64,000 nucleotides of DNA from Eukaryota sp. TZLM1-RC (taxonomy: Eukaryota > Protista > Metamonada: BaSk clade). Shown here in pieces: positions 17,855 to 49,401 of this stretch; position 1 is the first letter of the stretch, and each line of letters begins with the position of its first letter. The translations under genes were made by a program, and so were the position numbers. The notes under the pieces are model-generated. The model saw only the letters and a program-made list of their open reading frames with translations, was not told the origin of the DNA and made no database searches. The stretch covers positions 868,001 to 932,000 of the forward strand of contig JAUPSS010000003.1 of NCBI GenBank assembly GCA_040285825.1, given 5' to 3'.

Positions 17855-20125
17855 ATGGATAAAGCATCATTAATTAATGGCCTGAAAAGCCACAATGATA
17901 ACCCTCCTTCCTCTCTGAGGAAGAGTAATGTCCCTTCTTTGAAGGAGAACAATCCACCACCCACGGTGAGTAATCCTTCCTTCGGGAAGAGTAATCCTCC
18001 TAAGGAGAGTGAGCTTTCCGCTGAGAAGAGCCTTGCCTCTCAGAAAGAAAGCCACCTCCCCAATAAGGAGAGTGAACTTCACACTGAGGAGAGCCCTTCC
18101 TCCCAGAAAGGAAGTCACCTCCCTAATAAGGAGAGAGGTAACCACGTTGTGGATGTGACAGAACTGTACACATATCCCAATAACTCCTCGGAGCTCCTTC
18201 CTTGTAGGAAGAGTTTTCTCACCCCGAGCGAGCAACGGAGATTCAAAGCGTTTGTTGTAAGTAATAAATCTGACGCCTGTACAGAGGGTGAAGGAGGCGA
18301 AGGCGAGCAACAGTCTACGACTAGCTCCTCACGTAAAACTCCCTCCAGCAGGAGAGGGGATGAGAGCGATGATGAACCACCTCATACACCCAATCCTCCT
18401 AATCCAACTCCTAGTTTCCCATCTACGGAAAAGACTTCTCAGGGTCTTTACCGAAGGAAATTAGCAAAGGCAGTTGAGGCTGTAACTAGAGATTTCTTAT
18501 TGGACCTCATCGCCAATCCTCCCGAAGATGTAATGGATTGGAGTGATGACGAATTATTAAAAATGGCTGAGAATGAGTCAGAACGTTTTGCGGGAGACGT
18601 AGACCCAGCCGAATGTAAGAAGGTCCGACGTGACTATTTAGCGAAACGTTGGCCCTTCCTCTTTGGGGAAGCCCACGGCAAAACACTTGACGACGTCGTC
18701 TACGAGAGTTATGATCAAAGTCCAAATCTTTTAAAGAGATTGGATGATCTTACCGATTCGGCAGTCTCGTGTGGGATGAGTGCAGTCGAGGATTGCTATT
18801 TCAGCGCTCCTCGTTCAAAGTATCAAGCTGCTACTCCCAGGCCTGCCAAATGGCATAGGGATGCAATTGATGACCACAAAATATATTTCAGTGGAAATCA
18901 AGAAGCTTACGACTGACTATTTTGGATAGCTAAAATGTATCCTCATAATCAACAAGGTAGAAACCTTAGAGGCGTCGTACGGCATTTCCTAGTGGAGAAC
19001 GTACACCCAAAAGATTCCATTGCGGACATTTTTATTATGCTTGGGGGCAGATTCGATGAATCTCGAGGTGACACCCTTCAATTTCATACCAAAGAGTCCT
19101 ACATTAGAGAAATAGGCACTAGGGTAATTGAATTGAAAGAGCAGTGTGTTGGCCCCAACAAGTTAAAATTAGTATATCCTGATGCATGGATGGCTAAACT
19201 TAAGGCATGGGTTGATAGCTGGCCCGATCAAAATGTTTTTGAGAATGTCTTAATAAAGAGCAGTTGCCTTCCATATGATCATAAACTAGCAGGGGTCCCT
19301 AGAGGATCTAAAAATGCACCAGACTGGGTGGATTTAAGGCCACCAGCCCAGACTGTACCTGTGCAGGAGGAACCTCCTAAGACAAGATTTTTCATAAAGT
19401 TGGGCGAAACATTGCCTTCAGAAGAGAGGAATATGAACCTATTTAGTACACCTTCGGTAGGGCCTCTGGCATCTAGGAGAGCTTCTTGTTAAGCAACTCC
19501 TACACAAGCATCTGTTATAAAATCATCTATACCCACGCAACCCCTAGGAACGAATGCTCCTAGAGATTCTCTCGTCGACACCCTCGGTCTTTATAGAACT
19601 CCTGTAACAGACGAGGAGAAATTGAGGAAAAGAATAGACGACAAACTCAGATGCCTAGTTAAGTTAAATGAAGCGTTTGACGCCAAGAAAATCTTCGACT
19701 TCGTTCTTAACTTTGGCAATTGGGCTAAAACAGTTAGGGATCGCGATGGACCCACCAGAGCATTTACGCCGATCACCAAATACGGTCAACCTGTTCATCA
19801 GTACGACTTCGTTAGATCTATGTTCTTCGAAGTGGACCCTTTGTATTTGAGATTTATGATCGAGGGTAAGGTCATCGCAGAATGGCAGAGTTTTTATGGA
19901 GGCCGAACAAACGTGTTGGGCAACAACCCATCTGACGCCGAAATCTGGGAATATTTGCTACTCAGCACCCAATACAAATACACTACCGATGTTGAGAAGG
20001 CTTTAAGGTCTGTAAGACCACCTGAGATCAGTCGCAGAATGACTGCTGAATCTTCATGGACAGCCTTCATAGAGCAGATCATATATAATTCGACGCTCTA
20101 CAATTATGCCTGGAACGGATGGTAA
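17855..20125 (+). pseudogene. Element A N-terminal accessory/gag region (frameshifted ORF pieces)
   Basis: ATG 17855 lies inside the LTR. ORFs 17792..18916, 18935..19492 and 19622..20125; the last resembles the element C gag core (PVHQYDFVRS vs PVHEWDLFRS). Confidence 0.6.
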
Positions 20126-22948
20126 TCCGTCTGTCGTCTACCCAGCAAAGAGATTTCTCGAAACTATTAACGACAAAACAAACAATCAATTGATGGACAC
20201 ATATATCATTTGGATTGGCAAGTTTGATTTGCGTAACGAGAAACTGGGCGATGCGATTTACGATTTAGGTAACGCATTTGTTAATAAGGTCAACAGCCTT
20301 GAATTTTCGATCAAAGACATGAATTTGATAAGAACAGCTTTTGGTGCTCACGCTCCTGCGCAAAAAGGACGAAGCCAGTCAAAAGGTCCTTTTAAGAACC
20401 CTAGAGTAAGCAGTCGACCCATCCCTTCAGAGCAATGGTGTAACTTATGTAAAACCAATAAACATCCGGAAGAGAAATGTTTTAAATTAGTGGGAAGACC
20501 CGGTTCAAAAAAGCGTCAAGGAGGCGAAAAACGTGATAGAAAACGTAAAAGTAGTAGTAATAAATCAGATGATTATACATCTTTTAACAATAACCTTACA
20601 AATAATTCAATCAAAATTATTTATAAAATGAGCAAAGCAGATTCGAATTATAAGCACCTAAATCCATTTAAAAGATTTAGAGAGTCATCCAATCCTGTGG
20701 GTTCTATCCACAATGTTAGACTATCCAGAAGAGCAGAGGACCAAGAAATTTTTAACGGGGAACTTTGGTTAACCTGCACTATAAATAACGTGGAAGTACA
20801 AGGCGAAATTGATAATGGAGCTGCATTTTCAGCATTATCAATGGATTTAGCCTCTAAATGTAATATGACAGTTAATGACAATAAGACTGTCGAATACTTA
20901 TCGGCAAACGGTATTCGCTCCACGACCCTGGGATGTGCAAGTGGTGTTCTTGCACTAAATGTGGGTAGCTTGGCCACTCAAGTGTTTTTAAGGATCGAAT
21001 TCCAGATCATTCCTGGTACCAATAATTTTTTGATCGGAAGAGACTTATTACAAACCTTGGGGCTACGCACGAAGCACGGTTTTAATATTAATTTGGATCG
21101 CGAACATCGCACCATCTTAAATGCTGAATGTGAGTTCGATAATAGAATTTGTCAACCAATTAGATTCATAGAACAATTGAGTAATAAATCAGACTTAGGT
21201 AATGATTTTGGGCATTCCACATTTAGACATGAGTTAGATGAGTTGGGCTGTAGAATATGCCTGGATGACATTAGGGATGAGGAACGCCTAGTCGTGCTAC
21301 TCGAAAAATATAGAAATGTATTTAGTGGGCTACCTCACCCGGATGGAATTGATTGTCAGCCGATGACCATTCCATTTTATGACGAAAGTAAGGTCGTCAA
21401 AAGGAAACCTCGAAGATTAAACCCAGAAAAACAACGGGTAGCCGAGGAAATTTTTAACGAATTGATCCGTAATGGATTTGCTGTGCCCGCAAAGTCTCAA
21501 TTCAGTAGTCCCATCTGTCCTGTGATTTACCCTGATCACAGGAAACCACGATTAACTGGCGATTTTAGTGGTATTGGTGGAGTAAATGATTTAACTAAAC
21601 CTGTAGAGGCAAATTTGCCCAGGATTAGCGACATTTTAGAGTTTCTAAGTAAAGCTAATTATATAGCAACTCTAGATTTACCTAAGGCATTTTGGCAGCT
21701 CAAAATTGCAGAAGAGGATATTGATAAAACTACCGTATCAATTCCCGGGATGTTGATCAGTTTTAAAAGGGCTTGTTTTGGTTTGAAGAACGTTCCTGCA
21801 GTTTTCCAAAACATGATGATGGAATTATTTGATTCTGAGGGCGTATTTATTTATATCGATGATATAATAATAGTAGCTTCGACCCTGGATGAATTTCTAT
21901 CCAGAGTAGGTACGGTCCTAGAACGCGCCAAACGTTTTAGAGTTAACCTGGGCCTACCCAAGTGTAGCTTTACCACTTGCAAACATGAAATAAAAATTCT
22001 AGGTATTATTTTTGTAAACAAAACCCGTTATATAGATGAATCCAGGATCGAGGGACTGATCAATTTTACCCAAACCCAGGACATTACCTGAAGTTAGGAG
22101 TTTTATAGGTTCAATCAATTATATACGTGACTGGTTGCCAAATTTGTCTGACTTGATAGAACCAATCAACAAATTAACCAGAAACAAACCGTCAAAAATC
22201 AAGTGGACTCCTGATCATGACGAGGCTTTTGGTAAGATTATAAATCTTATCAAAGCAAATATCCCTCTTGAATTGCCCTCAGAAGACAAGCATATTTTAA
22301 TAAGTGCTGACGCGTCCGATGTGGCTGTAGGTGGAGTAATATGGCAAGAAGCTAACCCACCTAAAGATCCTACGACTCCGCTAATTAAGAGAAAGGTTGT
22401 ACCTATTGCCTTCCTTTGCAGATTATTATCAACTTCACAAAAGAATTGGTCTGTACTTCAGAAAGAGTTGTATGCAATTTTACTAATTCTCACTGACAGT
22501 AGTTTAGAAAATTATTTAATTTCGAGGAAATTAACTATTTTCACTGATCATAGAAATTTAGCATACCACATATCAGCTCCTGAAAAGAACAGAATTGTGA
22601 AGAGGTGGCAACCAATATTGTCAGAATTCAATTTTGATGTAGTCCACACTGCAGGCGAGGAGAATTATTGGGCAGACATGTTGTCTAGATTGGTTGACAC
22701 CAAACCCAAAACTCCTCGAGTCCAACAAGTGAGAAACTTGGCACCTCACAGAGTTGAAGAACAATTACCCTATTTAAATTTATTAACTAGAGTTAATTTG
22801 TTAAGGGATGATATTACTCAACCGTCCACAATTGAGCTACCCACGATTAATAGCTTATCTGCACTGAAAGAAGCAGTTGAGGATACTAAATTTGATTTAT
22901 TTGACACTTGGATCTCAAAGATTAGGCAAGAACAACTTATAGATGTTG
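20106..22948 (+). pseudogene. Element A gag zinc knuckle, protease, reverse transcriptase, RNase H
   Basis: CNLCKTNKHPEEKC, EIDNGA, LDLPKAFWQ, IYIDDII, ADASD..KELYAI..TDH..ADMLSR. Frameshift near 22.1k; interrupted by B. Confidence 0.9.
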
Positions 22949-23113
22949 TGTTGGCTTTAGTGCACGTTGGTTTTCCATAAACGAATAAAAACAGATGTTT
23001 ATAGAACAGAGGTAGAAAATCAATAATAAACTAAACAATAATAAATTTAAACTAGTGATGACGTGATACATCACGTCATACTGTCCGAAATTGGCAAGAA
23101 GAGTTTAGCCTGG

Positions 23114-23457
23114 CTAACACTGCCTCTTCTTCCTTCTTCCGCGTTTCTTCGGAGCAGGAGGATCGAGCAATTTCACATAGCGAGAGTAAGCGGAAGTGTT
23201 CGTTACTGAGGAAACCGGTTGTTTGGTAGTGGTTCCGTCAGACCACAGGATAGTGGCGATTTCCTGGGAAATGTCTAAAATAGCGTCTAAAAAGGTTTCG
23301 CCGGAGTCGGCAGCTGCATACGCATCTAGAACGGATTGGGGTAACGAGGAATAACAGGGCTTGATCAAATGAGTGGAGGTCTTGAGTTTCGAGCGGGTCA
23401 CGGGATTAAACACAAGGACAGAACTGGAGGATAATATTTCTTCAATGATGTAAGGAC
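23114..23457 (-). CDS. Element B integrase C-terminus (GPY/F, chromodomain-like)
   Basis: Continues GPY|IIEEI in frame after removing the hAT and one TSD. Ends RRKKRQC* overlapping the LTR. Confidence 0.8.
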
Positions 23458-25826
23458 TAGGCCCCAGCATTTGACTAACACGCTCAGACTCGACTCAACA
23501 TTTTCGAGTCGTACTCAAGCTCGACTCGGATAGACTGAGTTCAACTCGACTCCGACTCCATTCTGGTGAGTCACACTCAAACTCGACTCGAGCTTGAGTC
23601 GACTAATGAGTCTGAGTGAATTTTTTTCGTTTAGAGCACCTTGGATGAAATATAAACAACAAGGTCTATGTTTTAGGATAAACTTATTGTGATGTTGCAA
23701 TTTTGTGATGTTGCAATTGTATATGAACAAAACACTCATCTTTATTATTAAATCAAATCAAATCCATTCTCAAGCCATGACCGTAAGCACAAAACCGCAC
23801 GAACGGAATCATCAGCCAAACAGCATCTTTTCTCGGAAACCATATCCCCTGCTAGAGAAAAAAGCCGTTCACAGGGTACAGAAGTTGGCTGGATAGCCAA
23901 GAAATCAGCTGCTATTTGAGAAAGTACAGGAAATCGACGTTTGTTGTCATTCCACCATTGTAGTGGATTCACCGAAAGGTCAACCGGAGCTTCGGATAGA
24001 AAAGTGGAAAGTTCATCACCTTCTGCGTGTGATCTTCTGAGAAAAGGATTCCAAGAAGGTAAGCTGTCTATTTGCCACTGATGGGACTATTGACTCATAG
24101 TTTACATTGATAAGATCTTGCAATTTTCTAGAGAAATCGTCAGGAAATCGTAAATGAAGCCCCTTCAAAACGACGTACACGGGGATCAAGAATTGACGAA
24201 ACAAAGGCAGGGAAGTCGTAAAGTTCTTCTAAATACTGTTCCAGCTTTCCTAGCATCAAAGAAGCTGCTTCTTGGATAATCTGCGCTTCGTTTTGATAAG
24301 AATAGAGATGCGCATACAGACCGTCTATTAGCATAAGCACTAAACCACAGGTAGGATGCAATGCAGCTGAAAGGTAAACTGTACATTCGTAAAAAGGTGC
24401 AAGAAGATTAAGAATAGCTTCAATCTTCAGTTCTTCTTCTTCGGTGACTATGAGAGCCGTCATTCCCTCTTCAACCAATATTTTGGTAACAGCCGATTTA
24501 ATCTTCATGTAAGTATTCACCATCAAGTAGGTGCTGTTCCACCTAATTGCCGTATCAAGAGGGATTGTCTTCTTTTGAAGACCTTGTTCTTGTAGTTCTT
24601 CCCACAGTAACTGGTAGAGCTTGCTAGAAACATGGCATTGTCTAACAAAGTTGTGAATCTTCGACAAAAGACCATCAACCACCACAAGACCCTTTTTTAC
24701 AACCAAATTCAAAATATGGGCCATACATTTCTTGTGAAACAGCTTTGGTTGCTTTTCTGTGAAAAGTTTCAAAGCCTTTCTGACATTGGCAGCATTGTCA
24801 GATGTAATGGCGAGCAATTCAGCATTATCAGAGTTCTCAGAACTTTCATCAAAAAGTAATGGATATTATGTTTTCACTGTTGATATCCCTTAAAGCATCT
24901 TGTACAAAAAGCAAGAATTATTTCGGCTGAATGTGGGTGCGGAATTCTAACAACGTCCAGTGTTAGAGATGACAAGTTGAAATCATCACTAACAAAATGG
25001 GCAGTTATACCAAGATAAGGGCGCTTAGCTCTTGAAGTCCATAAATCTAGCGTCAAAGAATAGGAATGTCTATTTTGACCTAACCTCTGCAGCATTGATG
25101 GACGCATTTCGGAAAAAGCATTGCGAATGGAACGAGAAATGGACCATGAAGACATTATCACCGTATTCTCATTATAGAAATTCATTAAGTTACGAAAATG
25201 TGGGTTGTCCGCCAACGAGTACGGTGCGCCAGACTGAATGAACATCTTGAGCAAAAGCTTGCGGCCAGTTTCAACTTCTGCGGAAGACAAGACTGTTGCG
25301 GGAAGTGGAGTGAACGATGAAAGTTTTAAAGTGGGTTGCTGCTGCCTTATGGAACTAGTCCAGTTGGGATGTTCCTTTTCAAGGTGTCGTTTCAGTACTG
25401 TTTGAGAAGTCGAAACTGAAAAACTGGTTGACATTCCAGGGCACAGAAGACAGTGACGCTTGCCATTTTGTTCGGAAAAAAGACGATAGCCATTCCATCG
25501 TTGATATCCAGAAAGAGGGGAGAGGACAACAGGAAGTTCGGAGTCACTTACGTTATTAACTTCCTCGCGAATCCTCTTGGTAGGAGGAGTTTGGTTTACT
25601 GTCATTTAAGAAAGAATTATAGAAAAAGGATGTAATTATAAACAATAAGTGAGTGTGTGAAACTCGTAACAGACTCAATATTCTATGTTTATTAGTTCGA
25701 CTACACTCAGACTCCAACAAGTTGAGTTCGACTAGACTCGCACTCACATAGATAGGAGTTTGACTCAGACTAAACTCAAGTTTAGTCGGCTGAGCGCGGA
25801 CTCGCCGAGTCTGATGCTGGGGCCTA
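23458..25826 (-). mobile_element. hAT DNA transposon
   Basis: TIR TAGGCCCCAGCAT/ATGCTGGGGCCTA; 8-bp TSD GTAAGGAC (23450..23457, 25827..25834); subterminal GACTC repeats. Confidence 0.95.
23748..25605 (-). pseudogene. hAT transposase, frameshifted
   Basis: BED finger (CLLC..RHLEKEH), TLDLWTS, TSDNAANV, CMAHILNL, RWNSTYLM, LDPR, and dimerisation domain PLQWW..FPVLS..SVPCERLFS. The two frameshifts I traced fall in T homopolymers. Confidence 0.9.
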
Positions 25827-28800
25827 GTAAGGACCCACGTAGTGGCCATGGAGTTTGTCTGGCTTCTCGCGCAGAACAAAAACTCGATCGTTAACTTGTG
25901 GAGAGTATCTGGGAGGAGCTGGCGTAGACGTGTTCTTGGAAGTGGAGATTACGGAGGCCCAAGAACGAGTTAGCTGGTCAGTCAGAGAGGCAGTATGAAG
26001 AATATATTCTGGAATATCTGGTTCATGAAGTACGGAAGATAGACGATCTAGGATGGTATGAGGGAGCAAACGTGGAGAGGTCTCGGTACCAAATATTAGC
26101 TGATAGGGGGAGTGGTTCAGAGAGGAGCGATGTTGGGAGTTGATTAGCATCTGGCAGATTGGGACGTAGTGAGACCAATTGTCGTAATCAGAGAAGTCGA
26201 GCAATAACTTCCGGAGAGCCTGAAGAAAGGTTCGGTGTTGCCGTTCGACCAATCCATTAGACTGATGAAAATGAGGGATAGAGAGAGTGTGCTCGAGATT
26301 CAAGTAGGAACACATTAAGGTAAAGATCTGGTTAGAGAATTCAGGGCCATTGTCTGAATGAATTGACTTAGGCGCACCGAATATGGAAAACACATGGGTT
26401 AAAAAGGCATCAATTACGGTTTGGGCCTTAACATCGCGGGAGGGAACTAGAATACTGAACTTAGAGAAAGCATCCACGAAATGGATGATGTACTTGAAAC
26501 CAGCTACGTCGGGGGCAAGAGGACCTATGCTATCACAATGCAAGTACTCGAAGGGTCGGTTGGTGGAGTTGAGGGATCCAGTGGATGGAATGGATGGGGA
26601 AACCACGGGAGCGGTTTTCTGACAGGGAATGCAGTTCTTGATATGGGTAGTTAGATCAGATTTCATAGACGGCCAATAATAGTCAGAAGATTTTAGCCTT
26701 TTCCAGCAGTCATCAAGAGGAGCGTGGCCAGCTTCTGTTGCTCCGTGAATGAGCAGGAGGATCTCGGGACGCAGGACCGGCGGTACTAGAATCTTATGAT
26801 CCGAAGTTAGCTTCAGGCCAGACTGAGGGTCGATCTTGCAAGAGGCAAAGAGGGGGTCGTTGTCAGAGAGTTTCTGCTGGGCCTTGAATAATTTATTCAG
26901 CACGGCTTGGGCAGGGGAACTTCTTGGAGCGGGCGGAAGGTGGTCTGAGCTAGCAGAGGAATCTTCGGGAATGGCAGCAGTAATGGTTGATACGGTATGT
27001 TCGTCGCTGTCAGAAGAGATGTCAATCATTGCTGAATCAGAACCGAATCTTTGATCGTGTTCATCATCTTCAGACATGAATTGGGAACGGAGGAAACGAG
27101 GATGATCAAATACTTCTGGGTGGAGTTCAAAGATCTCTCTGCGGGTAGGCAAGTGGAACTGGGAACTAGGAAGGTAGTAAGTGGGGAGATCGTCTGAGGA
27201 GCGGTTGATGTCTATGAAGGCCTGACGACCATCTCTATAACTAATGATTTCGAGAACTTTATCTCGTAAAACAAAGTCAAGGCGGGAGTAATATTGAGTT
27301 GGGCCGTCAAACAGCAGAGAACGGATGTCCTCGAAGTGAGAACAAACTCGAGATGTTTCTAGCATGAACTGAGGTTCGTTTTCAGTTCCAAGGACAGAGT
27401 GATAATCCAGTGGCAAATAGAGGTAGTGAATTCTTCTGTCATGAGGGTCTATTTGAAGGCCATGAACCATCTCCAGGCATGGAATGGCTATAGGACAGGG
27501 AGTGATCTCGTCATCGTCGTAGTGGTAGACTGAGTGGATCTCGGGCTTGATTAGGCAAAGGGGAATGAAGGAAGTGACGTCTCGAGATGAAGGTAGAGTA
27601 TAGTCAGCGTAAAAGGGGTCAGGGAAAGGTTGGTGATCGGTTAAGGTGGGGCGTTTAGGGGTAGGTCTCAGGTCAGAGTATGTCAGAGCGGTAGGGAGTA
27701 AGCAAAAATCATATAGCTGTTCACCAGAAGGGGTACCGGTATGAGTATCAGGAATCCAGGGGAAATGATCACATTTAGGGGAGTTTGGACATTCTCTGGG
27801 GTTGCAAGGAGGGGGGGTTGAATCATGAAAGCAGCGGCTACTTTGGTTGGCACGTTTCCATAGGTTGGGGAAATAGAACGGCGGTGGATCATTATTTAAA
27901 TACGATTGATTGATTAGGAGGTGGTATCGGTGGATGAGGTGACGGTTTCTTTCCCAGCTAAAAGGGGCCATGTGAGTAGGGAGAGGAATCAGGTGGAAGA
28001 TATGCGCGTGGTCAATCAGAGAACCTAGGGTGACATTGGGATGAATATAGTTGAGGACAATAAGGTGAGCGTTCAGGGGCATAACCTTGGGAAGATAGTC
28101 TAACTGGGGCATCTTGGGATGCTGGAAGTATATGCGAGAGTTCCAGTTGGCCTGTTGAATCAAATCGTTAACCTTGAAGTTTCTAGCATAAAGACCAAGG
28201 GGTTCGGCATCGGGATCAGTAGGAACGGACACGGGTAGAGGGTCGAAAGCAGTTTTACCAAAATCTCTTGGAGCGATTGTGTTGTTAAACAGAAGTGGTA
28301 AATCAGTTGAGAGGACGAAGAAGCGGGCGGAGGAGGGAGAGAGTAGCTCGTTAGGTTCAGGATTCAAATTGTATTGGATAAAGTGTTTGCTGGAGTTGAG
28401 GTAAGCAGTAACAGAATGCTCAGGCCGGAGAGCAGAGGGGTGATGGGTTCTATGGGCGGTATCAAAGTCAATGTCATACCAATGAGGGGAGGAGTGCATC
28501 AGATCGTCGAGGTTCAGGTAATCCCACAGAGGAGATCTGGCCGATCCTCGATGAGTCATCATGCAGCACAGGGCGGGTGCAGGGTTGTCAAAGACACTTC
28601 TGGTCTTCTTCTCTTCTTTTTCCTCCTTCTTTGAGGCGGTTTTGACATAGTTAGCTCTAGACAAATAGTCAGCCCAGTAGTTCTTAGTTCCTTCAATATG
28701 AACGCAGTCGAAAGAGAAGGACTGAAGGACGGGGATCCATCGGAGAACAACTCGATTGTTGTCTGGGCAAGAGAACAAAAAGGCAAGGTTCTTGTGATCG

Positions 28801-31800: not shown

Positions 31801-32513
31801 AGAGATTGGAGCTTATGATAAGCCTCAGCAGAGTCTTCAAAACGGCAAAAGGATAACAAGTGGGAAAGAATGGCTTCAGGGTCGTTGGGATCGATTCCTT
31901 CGAAGATCTCGAAGGTCTCTAACACTACAGGGGCAATAGTACATAACACATACGGCAGCATAGCTTGGTGAAGCTGATTTTCAGAAACAAGGCGGCGCTT
32001 TTCGAAGGTAGCAACATTGGTGGTATCGGAGGAGTCAGAAGGCGGGTCTTGACTTTCTTCAAAATCCATCTCGGAGGGAAGTTTGAAGTTTCGAGGGTTT
32101 AAGGTCGAACTAGGTTTTTTTGTTCTAGTGGAGACGGGGGTAGATTCGGAGGTGTCTTCAGTACTCAATTCGGAATTCTCGGTGAGAGAAAGTTGGGATT
32201 TCAGAGCAGCGACTTCTTGAGCGAGAGCCTTGATAACTTCTCGGTCAGAATCACAGGAGGAGGACTCGGTTGCCTTCGAGCCGGAGGGAGACTGTGAGTG
32301 AGTAGAAGACGGATATCTTCTTGTCATGTCTGACGAGACATGATTGGAGGACATACGGGATGCGTACACCTTAAGCGCTTCCACATACTGGGAGATGGCT
32401 TCTCGACCAGTGTGTTGTAAATACGGAGCGACTTGAGGGTACCTGGCTACGGAGGTGGATTCTCTGGGGTCCACAGTAATTACTGTTGGCTTTAGTGCAC
32501 GTTGGTTTTCCAT
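25827..32513 (-). CDS. Element B Gag-Pol polyprotein (single ORF, about 2340 aa before the hAT insertion)
   Basis: CFYCKEPGHMVKDC, MVDTGA, IYMDDII, TDASD RNase H, HHCC plus D,D(35)E integrase. Ends at GPY where the hAT inserted. Confidence 0.93.
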
Positions 32514-32658
32514 AAACGAATAAAAACAGATGTTTATAGAACAGAGGTAGAAAATCAATAATAAACTAAACAATAATAAATTTAAACTAGTGATGACGTG
32601 ATACATCACGTCATACTGTCCGAAATTGGCAAGAAGAGTTTAGCCTGGCTAACAGTTG

Positions 32659-33522: not shown

Positions 33523-33640
33523 TGTTAGTCTTGAATAGTATTTATAGTTAATAGTTTAGTTATTAGTATTCCGCCTGTTAGCTTAAGAAGAGAGAATACA
33601 ATTCCTCTCGCTAATAAATTACTTTACATTTACACAAGCT

Positions 33641-36557: not shown

Positions 36558-39500
36558 TGCTAGATCTTTTTAAGGAGCAGATCAATCACGTGGACTTCTT
36601 GTATCAAAATAGAATCTCGTTCCAGACTGAGAACCGTCGCAGACAGACGGTACCTTCTCCCCCTGCTATCCCCAAAACAAGAGGTTCCAGCTCTGGCAGG
36701 CGCCCAAAACAACAACGACGAGAAGGAAGCTCTACTCAACCGTCTTCCACTCAGTCTGATGTCAACGTCCAATGCAATTTCTGTAAACAAATGGGTCATC
36801 CGACTGAAAGGTGCCCTAGTGAGGACTGCCAAAGAAGCAAAAAGTGGAGAGAGCAACAAGCTCAACACAAAGCTCGAGGCAGAGGTTCTAGAGGTTCTGG
36901 TTTCCGTAGCCGAAGAGGCACTCGCGGCAGAGGCAAGGGCTCTTCATCATATAATAAACGTTCCCGTCACTATTTACACTGTTTTGAAACCATACCCCCT
37001 ACAACTACAACACATTCCCACACAGAAAACACAACATGGAAAGATTCCCTAATCAATCCTTTGGCCAACTTGGAACATACCAAGACGCATAACATTCAAG
37101 CTAATTTCTTCTCAGAACAAGCTGAATATGATTCCGATACAATATTTATGGTACAATCCATAAAGTCCACAACCAACTGCCTACAATTAAACTTCTTGAT
37201 CAACAATGTCGAAGTTAAAGGCATAATTGACTCCGGTGCAACATGCTCAGTAGTCACAGAAGACGTCATCAGTAATTGTAACATGGCACGTTCCAACGAA
37301 ACCATATCATACAAGATTGCTGATGGATCTACCTCACAGTCCCTTGGTACTGCTTCTGGAACCCTTAGCATTAGACTAGGCAGTGTTTCCCAGATTGTAC
37401 ACGTGAAACACAAGTTCAGCATCGTTCCTGGACATGAGACCATTCTCATTGGTGCTGACTTGTTGAGTCACCTTGGGCTGATGAACAACAAGGGCATTTA
37501 TATTAGAATGGACGACGCCTGTCGCACATTACTATTACCTGAAGCCGAATTCGACCATCGAATATCGCAAGCTTCAGAAGTCGTCAACGTTTCCACACGT
37601 TGGTTGGAACACATCAACTCATCTGGTTGTACCATCAACCTCGACAACGACCATTTCAAGAAGTCCCTACTTCATACCTTGAAAGAGTTCGAAGACGTAT
37701 TTACCCTCAAGCCTCATGCTGAAGGTATTGATTGCCCTCCCATGGAAATCAACTTCTACAACGAAGACGTCAGAGTTAGAAGACCCCCCAGGACCCTGAA
37801 TCCAGCCAGGTTAGAGGTCGCTAACCAAATTTTCGACGAACTCGTAGACTCAGGATTTGCTGTCCCATCGAACCATGAGTTCAGCTCCCCTGTCTGTCTA
37901 GTGGTCTACCCAGATCACCGCAAGCCCCGCCTTACTGGTGATTATAGTGGCAAGGACGGAGTCAACGCCAACACCATTCCTGTTGAGCCCAACCTTCCAA
38001 GGATCTCCGACGTGCTGGTATTTCTCTCCCAAGCGAACTACATAGGCACCCTTGACCTCCCCAAAGCCTTCTGGCAACTCAAGATTGCTGAAAAGGATTG
38101 GCAGAAAACAGCCCTGAGCATTCCTGGCAAAAGTATCATGTTCAAACGTGCAGCTTTTGGCCTAAAGAATGTCCCAGCCGTTTTCCAAAACGTCATGGCT
38201 GACATCTTCTCTGGAGACGGTGTCTTCATTTACATAGATGACATCATAATCATAGGTTCAACCTTTGACGAATTCATTGAACGCCTCCGTCGCGTCCTTG
38301 ATCAAGCCAGATGCAAAAGAGTTTCCTTGGGACTTCCAAAGTGCCATTTCGTGTCTTCCAGACACCCAATCAAGATACTGGGCAGTGTTTTCCAAAACAA
38401 GCAACGGACTATCGATCCCACTCGCGTTGAATCTTTGCTGAATCTACCTAGACCAAAGACAATCAAAGACGTCCGCAGCCTCGTAGGATCAGTCAACTTC
38501 ATTAGAGAATGGCTTCCTCAGGTATCTGAGCTCATCGCTCCTATCATCAGATTGACTAAGAAGGATGGAACTAACTCCAACGTTAAACCCAAACCCCGCG
38601 CGCAACGCCTTCAATGGACCGACATGCACGATGGACTCCTTCGAAAGATCAAACAACTGATAGCGAAACACATGCCGCTCAGCTTACCTCCGCAGGAAAA
38701 CCAAATTTTAATTAGTTGCGATGCATCCGACATTGCTGTAGGCGGCGTCATATGGGAACAAATCGAACAAGTCGACGACCCCGGTACCCCCCTGATCAAT
38801 AGGAAATGTAGGCCTATCAGCTTCTTCAGCCGGTTGTTAACCAACTCGCAAAAGAACTGGCCGACTAACCAAAAGGAACTCTACGCTATCCTACTCATGT
38901 TAACTCAAAGTGGTTTTGAAAACTACTTAAAAGGAAGGAAACTGGTCATATTCACAGACCATCAAAACCTTACCTACATGTTCACGGCTCCTGAGAAGAA
39001 CAGAATTGTAACAAGATGGTTACCCATATTCTCTGAATTCTGCTTTGACTTGGTACATACCAAAGGGGAAGATAACTTCTGGGCTGATATGTTGTCTCGA
39101 ATAGTTCCACCTATAGACCATCAAGAGATCAATCATTTGTCCCATCAAATGCCTCCAAATTTTCATCCAATATTTTACATTGATAAAATTGATGGAACAG
39201 AAAATGAAAGATACTACATCGAAGACCTAAACAACTTCGAACGTATCATGGTCATCAGAGAACGATGTTCCAACGACCTGCCTATTTTCGAGCCATGGCT
39301 CTGTAGGATTAGGTCCGAACAGAAGCTTGCCATAGCTTCCAAAGACCCTCTTTCAACAACTGTGTTCATAACAATCATCTTGATTTATATATGACTCACG
39401 ACAACAAGATAGTGATTCCCAAATCACTCATTAAGGACACCCTTAACCTGTTGCATGGACTTCTGCAAGGAGGTCATCCAAGCAAAGCTGAAAGCCTGAA

Positions 39501-40784
39501 CAAGCTCAGGAACAGCGATTATTGGTGGCCAAACATGCTCACCGACATGAATAAGCACGTCCAAGAATGCCCCTCCTGTCAGAAAACAAAGCCAGTTCCC
39601 AAACTGCATGTTCCCCCAACCGGTTCATTGTGGGCTGACAGACCTTTTGCTCGCGTCAACGCCGACGTCATTGGTCCTCTTCCAGAAGATCAAGAAGGCT
39701 ACAAATACATCCTCGTATTTATCGACAGCTTCTCTAGGTTCACGATCATCGTGCCTTTAAAAGAGATAAATGCCAATCTTACTGCAGATGCATTAATTTG
39801 GAAAGTCTGTGCCATCTTTGGTATTCCATTTCAAATCCACAGCGATAATGGACCCGAATTTTCCAAGGCTGTCTTTGACGAATTAAGCAAATTTTTGGGC
39901 ATAGAGGTGTCAAAGTCAATACCTAGGTTTTTCTCAGTCCAACGGCCTGGTAGAGCGCCGACACAGAGACATCCTGCAAAACCTACGGAAATTGCTCGTA
40001 GACTTCAATGCCTACGATGTGTGGTCTGAATACTTGCCTTATGTGCAATTATTGATCAACTCTTCCAAGAGCTCAATAACCAACCACACTCCATACCAAG
40101 TGATCTTTGGCTCTGATGTGTCTCCCAGATCTGACCCTGGCAAAATTCTTGAAATCATTGAAAGCTCGACGTCTGAGTCATCTTTTTATTCAAGAAATTC
40201 AATCTAAATTTCGAAGATTGAAAGAGAAACAAGAAAAGGCAGCACATCATCAAGCTTCCAAAGCTTCCAAGCTAGCTAGATCGTCAACTCCAAACCCTTT
40301 TGAAGTTGGTCAATTGGTATTGAGAGCATCTGGCTCTTCCGCTAAGCTTCATGGAGACTATTTAGGACCCTTCCTAATTACTGAAATCGTATCCAATTCG
40401 TCTGTGAATATTAAGAATCTCTGCACAGGTACGATTGTCCAAGCTAGCGTCAAACACTTAGCTCCCTGGCACTCCAGCTTGCCCACCAACGATGAGTTCC
40501 ACTCCTGGGTCGCTGCTGGTGATGTCGAAGAACACATCATTGAAAAAGTGCTCAGCCAGGAAGGTGACTTTTGCCAAGTGCAATGGCCAGGTAAAGAGAT
40601 CACCACTGAGCATGTGTCTACAGTCCAAAATACTGCCGCGTATAAAGACTTCATCAAGACTTCAAAAGCACGTCGCCATACTAAATCCGCTCCTCCCAAG
40701 AAGCGTCATAATTCTATTAGTTCACCTCCTGTGACTAGAGCTTCCAGGGCTCGTCGCTCGAAAGAGAGGAAAAGGCAGTGTTAG
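36557..40784 (+). pseudogene. Element C zinc knuckle-PR-RT-RNase H-integrase-chromodomain-like
   Basis: CNFCKQMGHPTERC, IIDSGA, IYIDDII, SCDASD, HSDNGPEF, GPF, IEKVL..QVQWPG. Several frameshifts; ends RKRQC*. Confidence 0.9.
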
Positions 40785-40933
40785 TCTTGAATAGTATTTA
40801 TAGTTAATAGTTTAGTTATTAGTATTCCGCCTGTTAGCTTAAGAAGAGAGAATACAATTCCTCTCGCTAATAAATTACTTTACATTTACACAAGCTATGT
40901 CACACGATAACCCTAGCCATAGACCATCACTTG

Positions 40934-41532: not shown

Positions 41533-41950
41533 TGTTGTACTGTGGACAATTAGTCTAGTACATTTGTATTTATATAGTATAGTTCACTAGTGATGGCCTT
41601 TATAAGGGCCGGTGAAATTCTAATAAATTACCCTTATTCTGTGTTATCATATATGGATAAAGCATCAAGTATCAGTATCATGCTGGAAAAAACCCCTGAT
41701 TGTTGTAAGTAATCCACTCAAAATTCAAAAACTTGTTGAGGGTGATGTTGTTCAAGAACTTGTGGATGAACAAGAGGAGTCAAGCAAAGAAGTTGAAAAA
41801 TGGAACTCATTACTCCTGGATTTACAAACTTCTTGTGAGGATTCATTATCAGAGTTTTCATTAAAATCGATTAAAGACAAAAAAACGATCAGGAAATTGT
41901 GAACACACTAAAGACGTTAAGGACATATTCCTGTGAATCACCTTTGCCAA

Positions 41951-43052
41951 TGTTGTTGTTACTGATAAACTAACTTGGTAGACAGATGAAGAATTCACAT
42001 GATGACGTGGCACTTGTTCAAGAACAAGTATTTCTATTAATAAAGTTCTCTTTTTTCTCTTTACTTCTTTGGTATTTCTGCCTAACGGCATCAATAATTA
42101 TTGGCCCTCATTGCAGATGAAATCTACACGCGTACTACATTTGTCCCTTGCTTCTATGGAAGTGGATGATGTTCTGTTGTTCCTACAACAGTGGAAGGTG
42201 TACTCTTCTGTTACACCGAAGAAGGACCTTGTTCCAGCAAGGCTCCTTGTTGACCCCTTCCTGTTAGAATCATTGGTTCTCACAAGTCCTGGGGTTGATT
42301 CATCCGATGAGGTGTTTCTGGATCATTTAAGATTCTCCACCTCGTTTTCCTCGTACGAAGAATTCAACTTGGTGATGTCTGAGTTGAAGGTTGATGTCCG
42401 TAAGAACGACGTCCGTGAACGTATGTCCTGCTACCTGAGACGTTTTCTTCAGGCGAAAAGCAGGGCTTCCGGACTGAAATTGCCTGACTCAGCCTTCATG
42501 ATCAGATTCGCCAAGGGTATTCTTCCATTAGGACTGCAGAAATCTCTGATTTCTCGAATTCGGGACGAGGTATTCCCCGATTTTCCAACATTGCTAAATA
42601 CCGCAGAGGATTAATTACTTGATTGCACGCGAGTAGCTTCTTGGAACAGGTCTTCAAAGACTGTTTCTGAAAATACTGACTCTGTGCGTCAAGCTGGTAT
42701 GAAGTCTCGTTCATCCCATAGGTCTTGCATTTTGACTGACGGGACATGTTTCAAATGTCATCAGAAAGGTCATCTAGCTCGTGATTGCCCCTCAAAAGTT
42801 AAGCACGAAATAAATCATTTACAACACGTGCCTCAGTATCTCACAAATCCCCTATCTTCATTATGCTAAATGGTTTACGAAACTGTTGAAAGAAAATGGG
42901 AAGAAGTAGTGTTGTTGTTACTGATAAACTAACTTGGTAGACAGATGGAGAATTTACATGATGACGTGGCACTTGTTCAAGAACAAGTATTTCTATTAAT
43001 AAAGTTCTCTTTTCTCTCTTTACTTCTTTGGTATTTCTGTCTAACGGCATCA
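41951..43052 (+). mobile_element. Small non-autonomous gag-only LTR element D (1.1 kb)
   Basis: 143-bp LTRs at 41951..42093 and 42910..43052 (about 4 mismatches); TSD CCAA; PPT; gag-like ORF 42069..42614 and CFKCHQKGHLARDC knuckle; no pol. Confidence 0.9.
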
Positions 43053-45184: not shown

Positions 45185-46500
45185 TTATTAAAAAACGTAA
45201 AAATCAACATTTGAATAATCCATTTCTTCCAAAACAAAACAACTAGATGCAACTGTCTCATTGTGAGATCCAAGAGAAAGCAAAGTATCAGAAACCTTTT
45301 TCAACATCCCTTTAAAAATAGAAAACACAATTCTATTTTGCCAAACCAATCTATTTCTGTTAGTTCTTCTCTTTACAATCATTTCAGAATCTGCTAAAAA
45401 ACGTAAGGCCGTGGGAGCAAGTGAGTAAAATAGAGAAAATACAAATGGATACAAATTGTATTTTGCATGCTGCTGGGTGGACACTATGGTCAATGGTTCA
45501 CTGTAATTTGCGAAATGATCTGTCTTGCAAATGTGGAGCTGGTTTAGCATTATCACATCTAGTCAATTACAATAGATTTATTTCTTATCGTTCCACTTTG
45601 CATGATGCTGTCAGAGATCAAATCCATGCAATGTGTAATTACTAAACATATTGAATCATTTGCAGAACCGTTGTTGAGGTCTCTTGAAATTAATGAAAAA
45701 GTAAGAGATTCAAAATAAGGAAAACGACGTGCTGATGTTGTTGTGCCCTCATGTGATGATGTCATAAATGTTGTTGATGTTGTAACAGTGGACGTTTGCA
45801 AAAAAAATGCACAATCCGAAGTATTTCCTCTTGATGATTCAGAATTGTACAAAAGGTAACAATATGCAAATCCCTTGAAGGAATTGAAACATGTTCGCCA
45901 TGTGGATTACCAAATTTGCCCATTTGCTATTTCTTTGTATGGACGCCTTGGAAAAAGTGACATAAATTTTATTGATGCTTTTGAAAATCTTGTAAAAAGA
46001 AGAACGAATAAGCGTTCTGATCGCTGTTTGTGGTTGAATTGTATTGTTTTTACCATTTTCAAAGCAGTTCATAAAATGATTTCGAAAGCTTTGATGTCTG
46101 TGAATGCACATTACGAAAACATTGCTGTTGTACGGTTTGATGGTGTGGAAGCTTGTTTTGAAGATATTGATTTGTAGATTGTATTTTTTTAGAATAAATT
46201 AATAGTTATTTTAAAAAAACAAGGATCTACAAACATTGCGTCCACTAAAATGAAAATTCGACTAATTCGGGTAATATGACATCCCCTCTATTATTCTTAT
46301 GAAAATCATCTTCAGCATCAAACAAAATCGACAACAGAGGTTCCAAAAAAGATTCAAATCTATGAGACTTTCAAATACATTATAATTGGTCTCTTACAGC
46401 TTCGTGAACCTTGCTTTATAAAAGTAATAAAATGTTTACAATTTAACAAATGAGTAATTGTAATTCTTCGAGAACATTTACAAATTATATTATGATTATG
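45185..46500 (-). mobile_element. Cluster of decayed RLE non-LTR fragments in alternating orientation (R2 -, R4 +, R2 -)
   Basis: ORF 45188..45556 (-); CKCG..HLVNY..HDAVRD and 45875..46177 (+); ICKCSRRITITHLLNCKH near 46.4k (-). Confidence 0.7.
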
Positions 46501-46519
46501 ATTTATTGTATTTAGATTG

Positions 46520-49401
46520 TATTTGGATATACAGCAACATATCAAATTTATTATTATGAGACTATGTTTTAGTTCCAACTTTAATCATATATTTCGATCT
46601 ACAAATCTTATTATCACTAGGCCTTTGGCCCAGAAGTTCAATGAATTACTTGCCAAAGTCTTGTCACAATTACTAGGATGTTAAATGTTCCAAATTCTAG
46701 ATCATGCTTATCTTAGTCCACATTATGGTGGTTCAGGTTGGACAAAGGCTTCTATTCTTACTTCATGTGCTTTTATTGGTGGATGTAGAAATGCAATTTT
46801 TGAGTTTTCTGAAACATTTGCGGATTGGGAGGATCTATTAATGACAACGCAAAGTTCTACTGTTTTTGCATTAAATGATGAAATTTCAAAAATTGAAGTA
46901 GAAAAATGGAGTCGATGCTTTCCCCAATCATTCAATGGTAAATCATTTATTCCGGAAAAATAATTTTAAATTTAAAAAACACTTTTCGAACATTACAGAA
47001 AAGATTGACTGGAACGTATGAAAATGATCCTTATAATAATATACGTAGCTCGGCTGTTTTAAATCAAGATCTTCGCTCATTGTTATTGGAAAAGGGTGTT
47101 TGTGAAAACCAATCATCAGATTCTGTACTGTCTGTAACAATTGTACTATGAAGATGTGGAGTGTGTGCTGCTAATGAAGCGTTTGTAACAAAAATCAGAT
47201 TATATTTGAAGATCCCCATTAATCAATTATTGTTCCCTTGAGTCTAAAGTGATTAAAGAAAGCTTGAGATAATATGAATGAAAAAAAGTTGATTTATTTT
47301 TTAATCATATTATAAAAGCCTTAGGGCGCCAACACTGCTTCTTCCTTTTTTCAAGATGAATCAGCTTATATAAATATGAAACTAAAACTATGAACCAATA
47401 ACTGAATAGCTAAAAATAACTAAATATACTAAGAACAAAATACTAAATTCTGAAGTTTTCTATTGTCTACAATTTTCCTGTAGTAATTGGGATTCAAACA
47501 AACACTAATTTTACATTTTTAAGATCGACAATTGATGTACTATGGCTCTCCCAAAATAATGTTAGTATAAGGTAGTAAGCAATAACTGAAAAGAGCCTCA
47601 TTCCAAGATCTGTGTGTTTGAATATTTTGTTGTGTATGTTTGAACCGCTACATAAAGACGCTCTGCTTTTTCTTTTTTTCGTAAACGAGTAACGTGGTAG
47701 TGTCGTTTAGTAAAGGTATCATGGAATCGAAGAATGGATTCACTAATGATCATGCAGAATCTATGTTGGATCAAAAACAACAGTAAGCGAAGTAACAAAC
47801 TTCAGAAACCTGAAGGCGGCCTTTTTTGTTGTTAACGTACTGCCTTTACGACTAAAAATATCAGAGAAGCAACGACTGTATTCTTGCCATTGAGTACAAT
47901 AATAGTAAAGGTGAAGTCTCTACTCATAAGCTCGTATGTAGTCGACTTTGTTTGTGTTTGGCTCCATAAAAGAGCGAGCTGCTTGAATGGATAAAATCCA
48001 TTGATTCGAGTTAAGGCTCCACGTTTTTGCTAGGAGTTTGTAGCATACATCACTGGAATCATCTTCCCCTTCCGTGTTATGTACTCTCCTTGAGGGGTTG
48101 ATTATGTACAGTGGGATCTGCATCCTTTTCTTCACAAGATGCTACATTAGGGAGGGGAGACCGAACTGGGTCCGTTCTCGTGGCCTTCTCTGACTCTGAA
48201 GGTTTTACTTCCTTTGTGAGGGGAGAAAGAGCCGTATCCGTTCTCGTAACCTCCTTATTTACTCTGAAAGGAGAGGTGGAATTTTGGTTCGCGCCTGTTC
48301 CTTTTGTAACCACTGTTGCAGAAGAATTGACCTCGTCCTGCCTTTCAACTGCTTCTTTCTTGAAGGGGGAGGTGGGATCCGGGACCGTTTCCTCGTCAAC
48401 CTTCTGTATGTTTGTTGTATGTTGTTGTTGTGTATCCTGCTGGTGCTGCAAGTTAGGTGAATGAGTGAAGTCAGAAAAAACTTTCCCTAAGATGTCTGAC
48501 ATGTTAAAAGGATATCTGGTTAGCTGTTACTGTGTAAATACTGAAGTTATAATGGTATACCTGGACTTAAAATGGTCAATAATTATTGTTGCCGTAAGTC
48601 TAAAATGATTAAAGAAAGCTTGAGATAATATGAATGAGGAAAAGTTGATTTATTTTTTTATCATATTATAGCAGCCTTGGGGCACCAACATTATTATCAA
48701 AAGAAAAATGTATTTGTTCGAATTCACCACAGCTCACTTTGCGTCATGTCATCAATTGTTCGAAATTGAAAACTTATCGTTCTTCATTGCATGATGCTGT
48801 TAGAGACACTGTTTTTAATATGGCACAAACTGTAAGAATTTCGTGCATCAAAGAGCCTCTGCTGAAGGAAACACTGTCATTGAATAATTTTGGTTTTGAT
48901 AATAGAGGTGATGTATACTGTGATTGGATTGAGAACTCTGAAGCTGTTGTTGACTTTGTCTCCTGTAATGTTGCAAATGACACTTTGGTTCAAAGAAGAA
49001 AACTTAGTTCTGTAAATGCTCTTGAATTTAAAGCTAAAGAAAAACATAGTAAATATGACAAAGATATCGAAGATGCTAATGCTGGTAGAAATACACCACT
49101 GGTATTTATTGCTCTCCCTTTTTCGATGAACGGAAGACTATCAGTAGAAGCAGAAACTTCTTTGAATGATTCCCAAAAATTGGTTCAAGAAACAACAATG
49201 AAAAAATTTAATATTTTTTTATGGCGCTTTTGGATTCAATTTGCCATTATTAATAAATTACCTCGGTTTTTCAATCGAATTAGAGAAGCTTTAGCTAGAC
49301 AGCAGGCGGATCAAGATTTTGTGGAGGAAATCTTGGTTCATTGAATTTCGTCCCATTAGTTATGAGTTTATTTTGTTAAGTGTGCAAGATGAATAAAAAA
49401 A
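46520..49401 (+). mobile_element. R1 RLE non-LTR fragment interrupted by LTR element E
   Basis: LSPHYGGSGW region, then ORF 48739..49344. The R1 sequence CAATTAT|TATCAAAAG is split at the E insertion. Confidence 0.8.
47231..48690 (-). mobile_element. Small non-autonomous LTR element E (1.46 kb)
   Basis: Diverged 104-bp LTRs at 47231..47334 and 48587..48690; TSD TTAT; PPT GAAAAAAGGAAGAAGCAG on the minus strand; internal broken ORF from 48502. Confidence 0.85.

Follow-up and report, generated by a model that had tools for sequence, protein, structure and literature searches.

How does a Ty3/gypsy retrotransposon start reverse transcription when a palindrome lies where its tRNA primer-binding site (PBS) should be? 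To our knowledge, few steps in the replication of retroelements are more strongly conserved than the choice of primer; use of a tRNA is nearly universal, and among LTR elements the sole exception whose mechanism has been worked out is self-priming of the Tf1 type. To address this question, we present here an analysis of five LTR elements (A to E) in a 64,000-nt stretch of contig JAUPSS010000003.1 (the window) from Skoliomonas litria isolate TZLM1-RC, together with their relatives.

Sample and alignments

The LTR boundaries of A to E were checked independently using LTR pairs, TG..CA ends, 4-bp target site duplications (TSDs), and polypurine tracts. Eight further two-LTR elements were taken from three Skoliomonas genomes, for a total of 13. 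The covariation alignment contained 16 junctions, unpaired rows included. L001, L006, and L009, which have LTR-like ends and the 12-mer and no second LTR in the fetched stretch, were used only as unpaired rows, as were the junctions L005:4801, L009:7951, and L010:17417. Control gypsy elements (n = 29) came from metagenomes and were processed with the same pipeline. The larger tree was run with a lighter model. L086, a contig labelled as human-skin metagenome, was excluded from every analysis.

Elements in the window

All five elements are genuine Ty3/gypsy LTR retrotransposons (Table 1). Their LTRs are 104 to 171 nt long, and direct LTRs with TG..CA ends, a 4-bp TSD, and a polypurine tract before the 3' LTR were found in the five window elements and the eight elements from fetched loci. 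Pfam domains follow the order protease, reverse transcriptase (RT), RNase H, and integrase in B, C, and A; the pol domains of B lie within one ORF, and those of A, which is interrupted by nested B and C, are split by B. Elements B and E are on the minus strand, a correction to the initial annotation. The LTRs had been described as unrelated, and their bodies indeed cannot be aligned, but all share a TGTT start and an A(A/T)CA end. A paralogous empty site for E is present near 58190-58206. A candidate sixth element ("element F," 48704-49410 and 58206-58910) was rejected as an LTR pair and is a duplicated ORF-bearing segment.

Table 1. Coordinates of elements A to E and their parts in the window
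Feature	Position	Strand	Details
Element A 5' LTR	17735-17869	+	135 nt, TGTTG..GCATCA; TSD AGTA at 17731-17734
Element A palindrome	17868-17879	+	CATTAATTAATG; begins on LTR terminal CA
Element A 3' LTR	41533-41667	+	99.3% identical to 5' LTR; after polypurine tract, before TSD AGTA
Element B, whole	22949-32654	-	TSD GTTG
Element B 5' LTR	32484-32654	-	171 nt; 100% identical to 22949-23119
Element B palindrome	32474-32485	-	12-mer CAGTAATTACTG; A-T pair extends it to a 14-mer, 32473-32486
Element B 3' LTR	22949-23119	-	Polypurine tract 23120-23143 (minus-strand reading)
Element B gag-pol ORF	25824-32609	-	Single, 2261 aa
hAT insertion within B	near 24140-25605		
Element C, whole	33523-40929	+	TSD CTTG
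Element C 5' LTR	33523-33673	+	151 nt; 100% identical to 40779-40929
Element C palindrome	33672-33683	+	CAATACGTATTG
Element C 3' LTR	40779-40929	+	Preceded by polypurine tract ending GGCAG
Element D, whole	41951-43052	+	Non-autonomous: 816-nt interior, no pol; TSD CCAA
Element D 5' LTR	41951-42093	+	143 nt
Element D palindrome	42092-42103	+	CAATAATTATTG
Element D 3' LTR	42910-43052	+	97% identical to 5' LTR
Element E, whole	47231-48690	-	Non-autonomous; TSD TTAT
Element E 5' LTR	48587-48690	-	104 nt
Element E palindrome	48577-48588	-	CAATAATTATTG
Element E 3' LTR	47231-47334	-	~90% identical to 5' LTR; preceded by minus-strand polypurine tract ending AGCAG

Position of the palindrome

At the end of each of the five 5' LTRs in the window lies a perfect CA-N8-TG palindrome whose first base is the C of the LTR's terminal CA, and all five lie, with one fixed geometry, where the initial annotation had placed them. 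These are the only CA..TG 12-nt palindromes in the window, all of them at 5' LTR ends, versus 1.0 expected from Markov-1 simulations; the chance of a palindrome per site, given a CA, is approximately 3e-4. The 8-mer is absent after the 3' LTRs of A to E and after a solo LTR in L003, where the TSD follows instead. In the wider sample, the 12-mer begins on the terminal-CA C, the expected PBS position, in all 13 elements for which two LTRs and a TSD were confirmed, which bears out the fixed register claimed earlier. The palindrome is perfect in 12 of the 13. The other, L003, has identical LTRs and a single A.A mismatch at pair 2, so perfect symmetry is not strictly needed. The palindrome is found in elements whose LTRs are 100% identical, and thus in recently active copies; as had been pointed out, the non-autonomous D and E retain it. 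LTRs in the clade can be as short as 66 nt. A 14-nt palindrome in L008, from the sister lineage, could not be placed, and no LTR pair was found there; an identical 12-mer at L023:2860, inside a long ORF and without LTR features, was treated as a chance occurrence.

Search for a primer-binding site

Canonical Ty3/gypsy elements carry TGG 0 to 5 nt past the LTR, as in the tRNA-iMet PBS of Ty3. The control elements agree: TGG lies within 2 to 4 nt in 28 of 29, and none has a palindrome of at least 8 nt. The outgroup element L012 (27% identical) has a textbook tRNA-iMet PBS, TGGTAGCAGAGG, 3 nt past its LTR. The Skoliomonas elements share with canonical elements the domain order, TG..CA LTRs, polypurine tract, and short TSD; unlike them, the clade lacks a TGG PBS, and no consistent TGG follows the palindrome across the 16 aligned junctions. 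We give almost no credence to an ordinary tRNA PBS that begins at the palindrome-closing TG(G), with the 8-mer merely a spacer. The next base is G, giving TGG, in 10 of the 16 junctions, and several families share TGGCC. However, E, L005, L011, L009, B, and L007 continue TGA or TGT (the lack of a directly following TGG in several families had already been noted), and the first 14 to 20 nt of E, L005, L011, and L009 hold no TGG. Such a PBS would imply acceptor stems with an atypical first base, C or another, and the TGGCC.TCATGG that families share reads as the context of a start codon plus the outer helix. The 3' ends of iMet, Pro, and His tRNAs match no junction (three host tRNA genes and the L012 iMet PBS were covered), and a spacer needs neither palindrome nor covariation. 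The tRNA genes in L002 (Pro twice, His) gave only chance internal matches of 7 to 10 nt to the junctions; the window holds no tRNA genes.

Other known kinds of site were also sought. In B, C, D, and E, the junction zone has no Watson-Crick complement of at least 7 nt in the LTR, in keeping with the earlier statement that a Tf1-type PBS is missing; among A to E, only A has one, an 8-mer at +29. No GalEa-type downstream partner (6 to 7 nt or more) was found within 150 nt in A to E. The gag ATG lies within ~5 to 25 nt, or the ORF is continuous through the palindrome, leaving no space for another PBS, and neither a separate PBS nor another conserved block was found in the interval from the LTR to the gag start.

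Covariation and predicted folding

In the junction alignment, 95 of 96 cells are paired. The sample contains five different 12-mers that are distinguished solely by compensatory changes, two central pairs included. These changes fall at pairs 3/10, 5/8, and 6/7, confirming that symmetry and not sequence is conserved. Pair 3/10 is AU in 9 cases, GC in 5, and UA in 2, and the central pairs change from AU to CG and from AU to UA. None of 500 shuffles scored as high for covariation, and every slid register was far worse. Around the 12-mer is an outer helix of 2 to 4 bp with a 1- to 2-nt bulge that is always on the 5' side. It occurs in five sequences (GGC/GCC, GACC/GGTC, GTCA/TGAC, GACA/TGTC, and CCA/TGG), and none of 5000 permutations reached its observed mean.

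In 10 of 13 cases, the predicted homodimer reaches -21 to -30 kcal/mol, versus shuffled means of -8 to -21. The homodimers of A and L003 do not surpass shuffles, and a 12-bp duplex made mostly of A-U pairs is weak, which counts against a duplex. Of 12 monomer folds, 11 do not outperform shuffles (the exception is L004, z = -2.34), and a monomer hairpin was rejected as the selected structure, with unremarkable z-scores of -2.3 to +2.0 for 80-nt folds.

These results bear on priming by fold-back in cis, in which, after a cut behind a hairpin, the 3' arm of the RNA would serve as primer on its own 5' arm. Most families are predicted to form a bulged hairpin (outer helix, bulge, 4 bp, and tetraloop), the outer helix covaries, and the conserved hairpin site of fungal GalEa has been read as a hairpin (PMC5445492). 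The central pairs covary, yet they could not pair in a hairpin loop, which would not require pairing; this favors a duplex, and the monomer folds are no stabler than shuffles. Copying of the whole hairpin would shift the bulge to the other side, whereas it is always 5'. The geometric argument of the initial annotation also stands: because all 3' LTRs terminate in CA, a palindrome-paired primer can reach no further than position 10 if the terminal CA is to be copied, a cis hairpin then keeps at most 2 bp, and intermolecular pairing is favored. We consider fold-back priming very unlikely.

Symmetric covariation could also reflect co-evolution between a dimeric protein and the site it binds, since symmetric sites of homodimers likewise change on both halves. 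Such a DNA-level site for the element's own integrase, Gag, or a host factor is in our view highly improbable, although TAATTA, present in three of the five 8-mers, resembles homeodomain sites, TACGTA resembles bZIP sites, and a cluster of GTAATTAC motifs lies outside any LTR element (L002, 18700-19190). The three Watson-Crick types at pair 3/10 are predicted by pairing and not by protein recognition, as base pairing likewise predicts covariation of the outer helix with its asymmetric bulge. ACGT and TATA cores would require different protein classes, and the position is that of the PBS, with no other PBS present.

Distribution among families

The skoliomonad elements form one clade in the pol tree with full support (100/100), and the trait is confined to one gypsy clade. 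The five families can therefore not be taken as independent cases, as they had been, and multiplication of per-element chances is invalid. The sister group of this clade includes L013 and L014, which bear the same 12-mer and are probably further cases of a palindromic PBS slot. RT-RNase H identity between families is ~46 to 64%. Autonomous families within one genome, such as A, B, and C in S. litria, each have their own 12-mer. Between sister families the sequence differs, and distant families have one in common. This distribution fits a family-specific self-recognition site.

Family specificity recalls retroviral dimer-initiation sites (DIS), such as the palindromic loop of HIV-1 SL1, which exist beside, and distant from, a tRNA PBS. 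The palindrome could be a dimerization or packaging signal only, with minus-strand priming left to a protein or to a host RNA, either a short or internal piece of a tRNA or some other RNA. Like a DIS, it is a self-complementary 5'-leader sequence, one that may pair two genomic RNAs; the apical tetramer of its predicted hairpin (AAUU, ACGU, or UAUA) is self-complementary and could form a kissing complex that then extends, as that of HIV-1 does, and the different 12-mers of co-resident families recall HIV-1 DIS subtypes. The tRNA comparison, moreover, covered an incomplete host set of three genes. Unlike a DIS, the palindrome fills the PBS slot in register with the LTR end and has no separate PBS beside it. 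A dimer signal gives no reason for single-nucleotide register with the terminal CA across families with such divergent pol sequences, no other conserved block lies between LTR and gag start, and the control elements have their PBS at exactly the same spot. We regard a dimer signal alone as unlikely.

Proposed mechanism

Our preferred reading, on which we are about evenly balanced, is that an intermolecular RNA duplex is both primer site and dimer link. From the sequence patterns, we infer pairing of two RNAs, cleavage, and priming in trans as follows. In this clade of very compact elements, a 12-nt self-complementary sequence that overlaps the CA at the end of U5 has taken the place of the tRNA PBS. 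Genomic RNAs from one family would pair antiparallel, two at a time, via the palindrome, and the duplex would double as dimer link and minus-strand start site. One of the RNAs would be cut within positions 6 to 10 of the palindrome by the element's RNase H, much as Tf1 cuts its own RNA duplex. The new 3'-OH would be extended on the partner RNA through CA, U5, and R, and the 12-mer would then be copied back to provide complementarity for the second strand transfer.

The Tf1 cut falls at a duplex boundary, and we know of no direct precedent for an internal cut in an RNA-RNA duplex 2 to 6 nt from its end. A long RNA primer would also need trimming against copy-back, which counts against priming in trans. 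More tentatively, a whole clade of LTR retrotransposons may start reverse transcription without a host primer, via annealing of same-family RNAs at a palindromic PBS.

Relation to known systems and significance

Tf1 of Schizosaccharomyces pombe is of Ty3/gypsy type and has no tRNA PBS; its PBS is not palindromic and complements nt 1 to 11 of the transcript, and its primer is thought to derive from its own RNA by an RNase H cut in an ~11- to 12-bp RNA-RNA duplex beside U5. The Skoliomonas elements, like Tf1/sushi elements, are Ty3/gypsy without a tRNA PBS. Unlike in Tf1, their site is self-complementary, four of the five window elements lack the LTR complement, and the proposed priming would be intermolecular with an internal cut. 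Unlike Tf1/sushi chromoviruses, they show no match to the Pfam chromodomain (PF00385) in the window ORFs, and chromodomain-bearing proteins fall outside the skoliomonad clade in trees.

The initial annotation named no precedent, but a partial one is published. The fungal Ty1/copia element GalEa has a 10-nt palindrome (the A of the LTR plus 9 nt) in the PBS slot and, 12 to 41 nt downstream, CHSeq2, which is complementary to CHSeq1; the two form a hairpin with a conserved A/A mismatch (PMC5445492). Substitutions in this site are mainly paired, tRNA and Tf1-type models fail, and the mechanism is unexplained (PMC5445492). A literature search for "palindromic PBS" found only this paper and a bivalve TRIM paper citing it. 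As in GalEa, the Skoliomonas palindrome includes the last LTR bases, lies in the PBS slot, and varies by paired substitutions. Unlike GalEa, the elements are gypsy by domain order, the palindrome is 12 to 14 nt and starts on CA, and in place of a CHSeq2-type partner there is the short outer helix with its 5'-side bulge.

The palindrome in Skoliomonas could account for the unexplained GalEa site, and a monophyletic, recently active gypsy clade provides a clean natural system for a start of reverse transcription free of host RNA. Annotation tools that demand a tRNA PBS will miss or mis-score such elements. If the 12-mer is a family-specific self-recognition code, it would show how co-resident families avoid cross-priming and co-packaging. 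If the proposed mechanism is true, dimerization, primer choice, and family self-recognition would be merged in one 12-nt element, and LTR retroelements would have a third way of priming in addition to tRNAs and Tf1-type self-priming in cis.

The five Ty3/gypsy LTR elements of the window (A to E, of which D and E are non-autonomous) were reconstructed de novo: direct repeats were detected, the junctions were read directly, and BLAST was used for A, which is interrupted. Nested insertions B and C interrupt A. All five LTRs start with TGTT and end with A(A/T)CA, and a purine tract ending in GCAG or GTAG precedes each 3′ LTR. In Pfam searches, A, B, and C encode protease, reverse transcriptase (RT), RNase H, and integrase in this order, and D and E lack pol. 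The ends of E are fixed independently by an empty site near 58190-58206, a diverged duplicate of its flank.

In every element, a CA-N8-TG palindrome (the 12-mer; its N8 core is the 8-mer) starts at the C of the LTR-terminal CA, at the 5′ LTR/interior junction where a tRNA primer-binding site (PBS) is expected; all five occur exactly where the initial annotation had placed them. The TSD, rather than the 8-mer, follows the 3′ LTRs and also a solo D-family LTR in locus L003; the 8-mer is thus internal sequence outside the LTR. Five 12-nt CA..TG palindromes were observed in the window against 1.0 expected from Markov-1 simulations, and 5/5 are at 5′ LTR ends.

Features of the window (A to E) and of loci outside it (L numbers; the same genome, related genomes, or metagenomes). 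In each of the eight further elements, L002 to L003, both LTRs are present, with a 4-bp TSD
Feature	Source	Position	Strand	LTR (nt)	TSD	Junction or description
Element A	Window	LTRs 17735-17869 and 41533-41667	+	135	AGTA	
Element B	Window	22949-32654	-	171, copies identical	GTTG	
Element C	Window	33523-40929	+	151, copies identical	CTTG	
Element D	Window	41951-43052	+	143	CCAA	
Element E	Window	47231-48690	-	104	TTAT	
L002 element	TZLM3-RCL					CAGTAATTACTG
L010 element	TZLM3-RCL					CAGTAATTACTG
L004 element	TZLM3-RCL					CAATACGTATTG
L005 element	GEM-RC1					CAATTATAATTG
L011 element	GEM-RC1	LTRs 9951-10016 and 16541-16606		66	GTAT	CAATAATTATTG
L007 element	S. litria					CAGTAATTACTG
D-like element, 830 nt	S. 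litria	L003:12944-14816 (with solo D-family LTR)	-		GTAG (solo LTR, TTAC)	CAATAATTATTG
A-like element in L003	S. litria			copies identical		CATTAATTAAAG, one A.A mismatch
Outgroup gypsy element	Metagenome assembly	L012:8065-15651		358, copies identical		TGGTAGCAGAGG
Sister-group 12-mer	L014	2291-2302				CAATAATTATTG
Sister-group palindrome, 14 nt	ENA metagenome contig	L008:919-932				GTAATTAC core
LTR inverted repeat, A	Window	17780-17800				GGCC..GGCC
LTR inverted repeat, B	Window	32590-32612				TGACGT-containing
LTR inverted repeat, D	Window	42005-42025				CTTGTTC/GAACAAG
hAT-like ORFs inside B	Window	24140-25605				
Duplicated segment	Window	48704-49410 and 58206-58910				~700 nt, 85-91% identity
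ORF in duplicated segment	Window	48739-49344				201 aa
Duplicated segment	GEM-RC1	L001:2975-9792 and 14097-20913				6.8 kb, 99.6% identity
Intergenic repeats	TZLM3-RCL	L002:18700-19190				8 copies of GTAATTAC

Other features of the window include a perfect small inverted repeat upstream of AATAAA in each short LTR of A, B, and D, which may be a promoter or R-region hairpin, and the hAT-like ORFs between the end of the long gag-pol ORF of B and its 3′ LTR, with weak DUF659 and hAT RNase-H-fold matches below Pfam cut-offs. The segments duplicated 9.5 kb apart were rejected as an LTR pair; they are a duplicated ORF-bearing segment, the second copy of which preserves the empty site of E.

The pol of C has near-identical matches in Eukaryota sp. 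TZLM1-RC, the type isolate of Skoliomonas litria (PMC11603281), and matches of 40-53% identity in its relatives TZLM3-RCL and GEM-RC1, with none above 29% identity outside these three. Retrotransposons are not discussed in the genome paper. Exact protein look-up yielded 12 further loci, to all of which one LTR-pair script was applied, giving eight further verified elements. The 12-mer is perfect in 12 of the 13 verified elements, the window five included, in five different versions, and the palindromy reported in the initial annotation extends beyond the window; the exception is the A-like element in L003, mismatched despite its identical LTRs. The D-family element and solo LTR of L003 are inserted antisense in the RT region of this A-like element. 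The L011 LTRs, to our knowledge among the shortest described, include AATAAA as well as a short inverted repeat, GTACTG..CAGTAC; at this length the promoter, R, and U5 must be very compact. The L001 duplication, a tandem or segmental rearrangement, flanks a gypsy pol with a 3′ LTR-like end at 14096 and no detectable 5′ LTR. The L002 repeats, flanked by UQ_con and SRP14 genes, have no LTR at the site; several are in the context (C/T)AGTAATTACTGGACCC, a B-type junction plus leader, and they could be a leader-derived minisatellite, sub-terminal repeats of another element, or protein-binding sites.

Conventional primer sites were sought at the same junctions. As the initial annotation had noted, no Tf1-type PBS is visible: a complement of at least 7 nt between junction and LTR is lacking in B, C, D, and E. 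A GalEa-type downstream partner of the palindrome was not found. TGG happens to be read at 10 of 16 aligned junctions, and TGT or TGA at those of B, E, L005, L005b, L007, L009, and L011; the recurrent TGGCC.TCATGG is outer helix (described below) plus start-codon context. The proposed comparison with tRNA ends likewise gave no match, within a partial host set of three L002 tRNA genes and the iMet end. The palindrome is either followed by the gag start at a distance of about 5-25 nt or itself traversed by an ORF, which leaves no space for a second PBS.

Controls came from a metagenome scan by RT-RNase H alignment (80 loci; L086, labelled a human-skin metagenome contig, was left out), processed with the same script. 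It recovered 29 control elements bounded by two TG..CA LTRs and a TSD; in 28, TGG lies 2-4 nt past the LTR, and palindromes of at least 8 nt across the CA are absent from all 29. Outgroup L012 (27% identical), which encodes a zf-MYND domain in its polyprotein, has a classical tRNA-iMet site 3 nt past the LTR. The RT-RNase H tree unites all Skoliomonas elements in a single clade (support, 100/100). The LTR bodies of the five families, initially described as unrelated, are indeed unalignable, but the single clade indicates a shared origin. In a wider tree, built by quick search under LG+G4, the sister of this clade is a small group comprising P0049 (L008), P0062, L013, and L014 (SH-aLRT, 97 for the union), and all TGG-site lineages fall outside the union. 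The LTR start of L014 was confirmed via a partial 3′ LTR, with the gag ATG at 2316; L013 has the same 12-mer after an LTR common to tandem copies. The L008 palindrome lies 117 nt before a 1,546-aa gag-pol ORF; no LTR pair was found on its 6.4-kb contig, which opens with a 239-nt inverted repeat that may be an assembly artefact.

Covariation was scored in an ungapped alignment of the 16 junctions. Standard pairs occupy 95 of 96 cells of the 12-mer, bearing out the earlier view that symmetry rather than sequence is conserved. Pair 3/10 is AU 9, GC 5, and UA 2; pair 5/8 is AU 15 and UA 1; and pair 6/7 is AU 14 and CG 2. The observed score was reached by 0/500 shuffles, and slid registers were all far worse. 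Double changes keep the two central pairs complementary, though they are unpairable in a hairpin, which points to a full duplex of the 12-mer. Outside it, the last U5 bases form an outer helix of 2-4 bp with the first leader bases, in five different sequences (observed mean reached by 0/5,000 cross-pairings), with a bulge of 1-2 bases (A, AT, or AA) always on the 5′ side. ViennaRNA predicted homodimers at -21 to -30 kcal/mol for 10 of 13 junctions (shuffled means, -8 to -21), and among 80-nt monomer folds only L004 departs from shuffles (z, -2.34; the other eleven, -1.6 to +2.0).

The initial annotation named no precedent, but a partial one exists: in fungi, GalEa copia elements have a “conserved hairpin site”, an unexplained 10-nt palindrome that includes the last LTR A, plus a second complementary box (PMC5445492). 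Phrase searches of the literature returned no other, and this site is cited once, for bivalve TRIMs. The Skoliomonas elements belong to a different superfamily, their palindrome differs in geometry and lacks the second box, and the trait maps to one clade. The present analysis contributes controls run through the same pipeline, an argument from the central pairs that a simple hairpin is unlikely, a test of the outer helix, one exception with a mismatch, and further cases in the sister group.

Since every 3′ LTR ends in CA, the first deoxynucleotides laid down would have to copy the LTR-terminal CA, and a primer annealed via the palindrome would have to end at or before position 10. Such an end would leave at most two base pairs in cis, so pairing would have to be between two RNAs. 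That the bulge is always on the 5′ side also speaks against copying of a whole hairpin. Under the two-RNA model, RNAs would pair through the palindrome and RNase H would cut inside the duplex; such a combined dimer-linkage and primer site is the favoured reading, at about even odds. Weak points of this duplex model are its A-U richness and the mismatch in the L003 element, and no precedent is known to us for cutting an RNA duplex internally. In each genome, the 12-mer differs among autonomous families, as it does among A, B, and C in S. litria; it also differs between sister families and is shared by distant ones. This distribution fits a role for the 12-mer as a family-specific self-recognition site.
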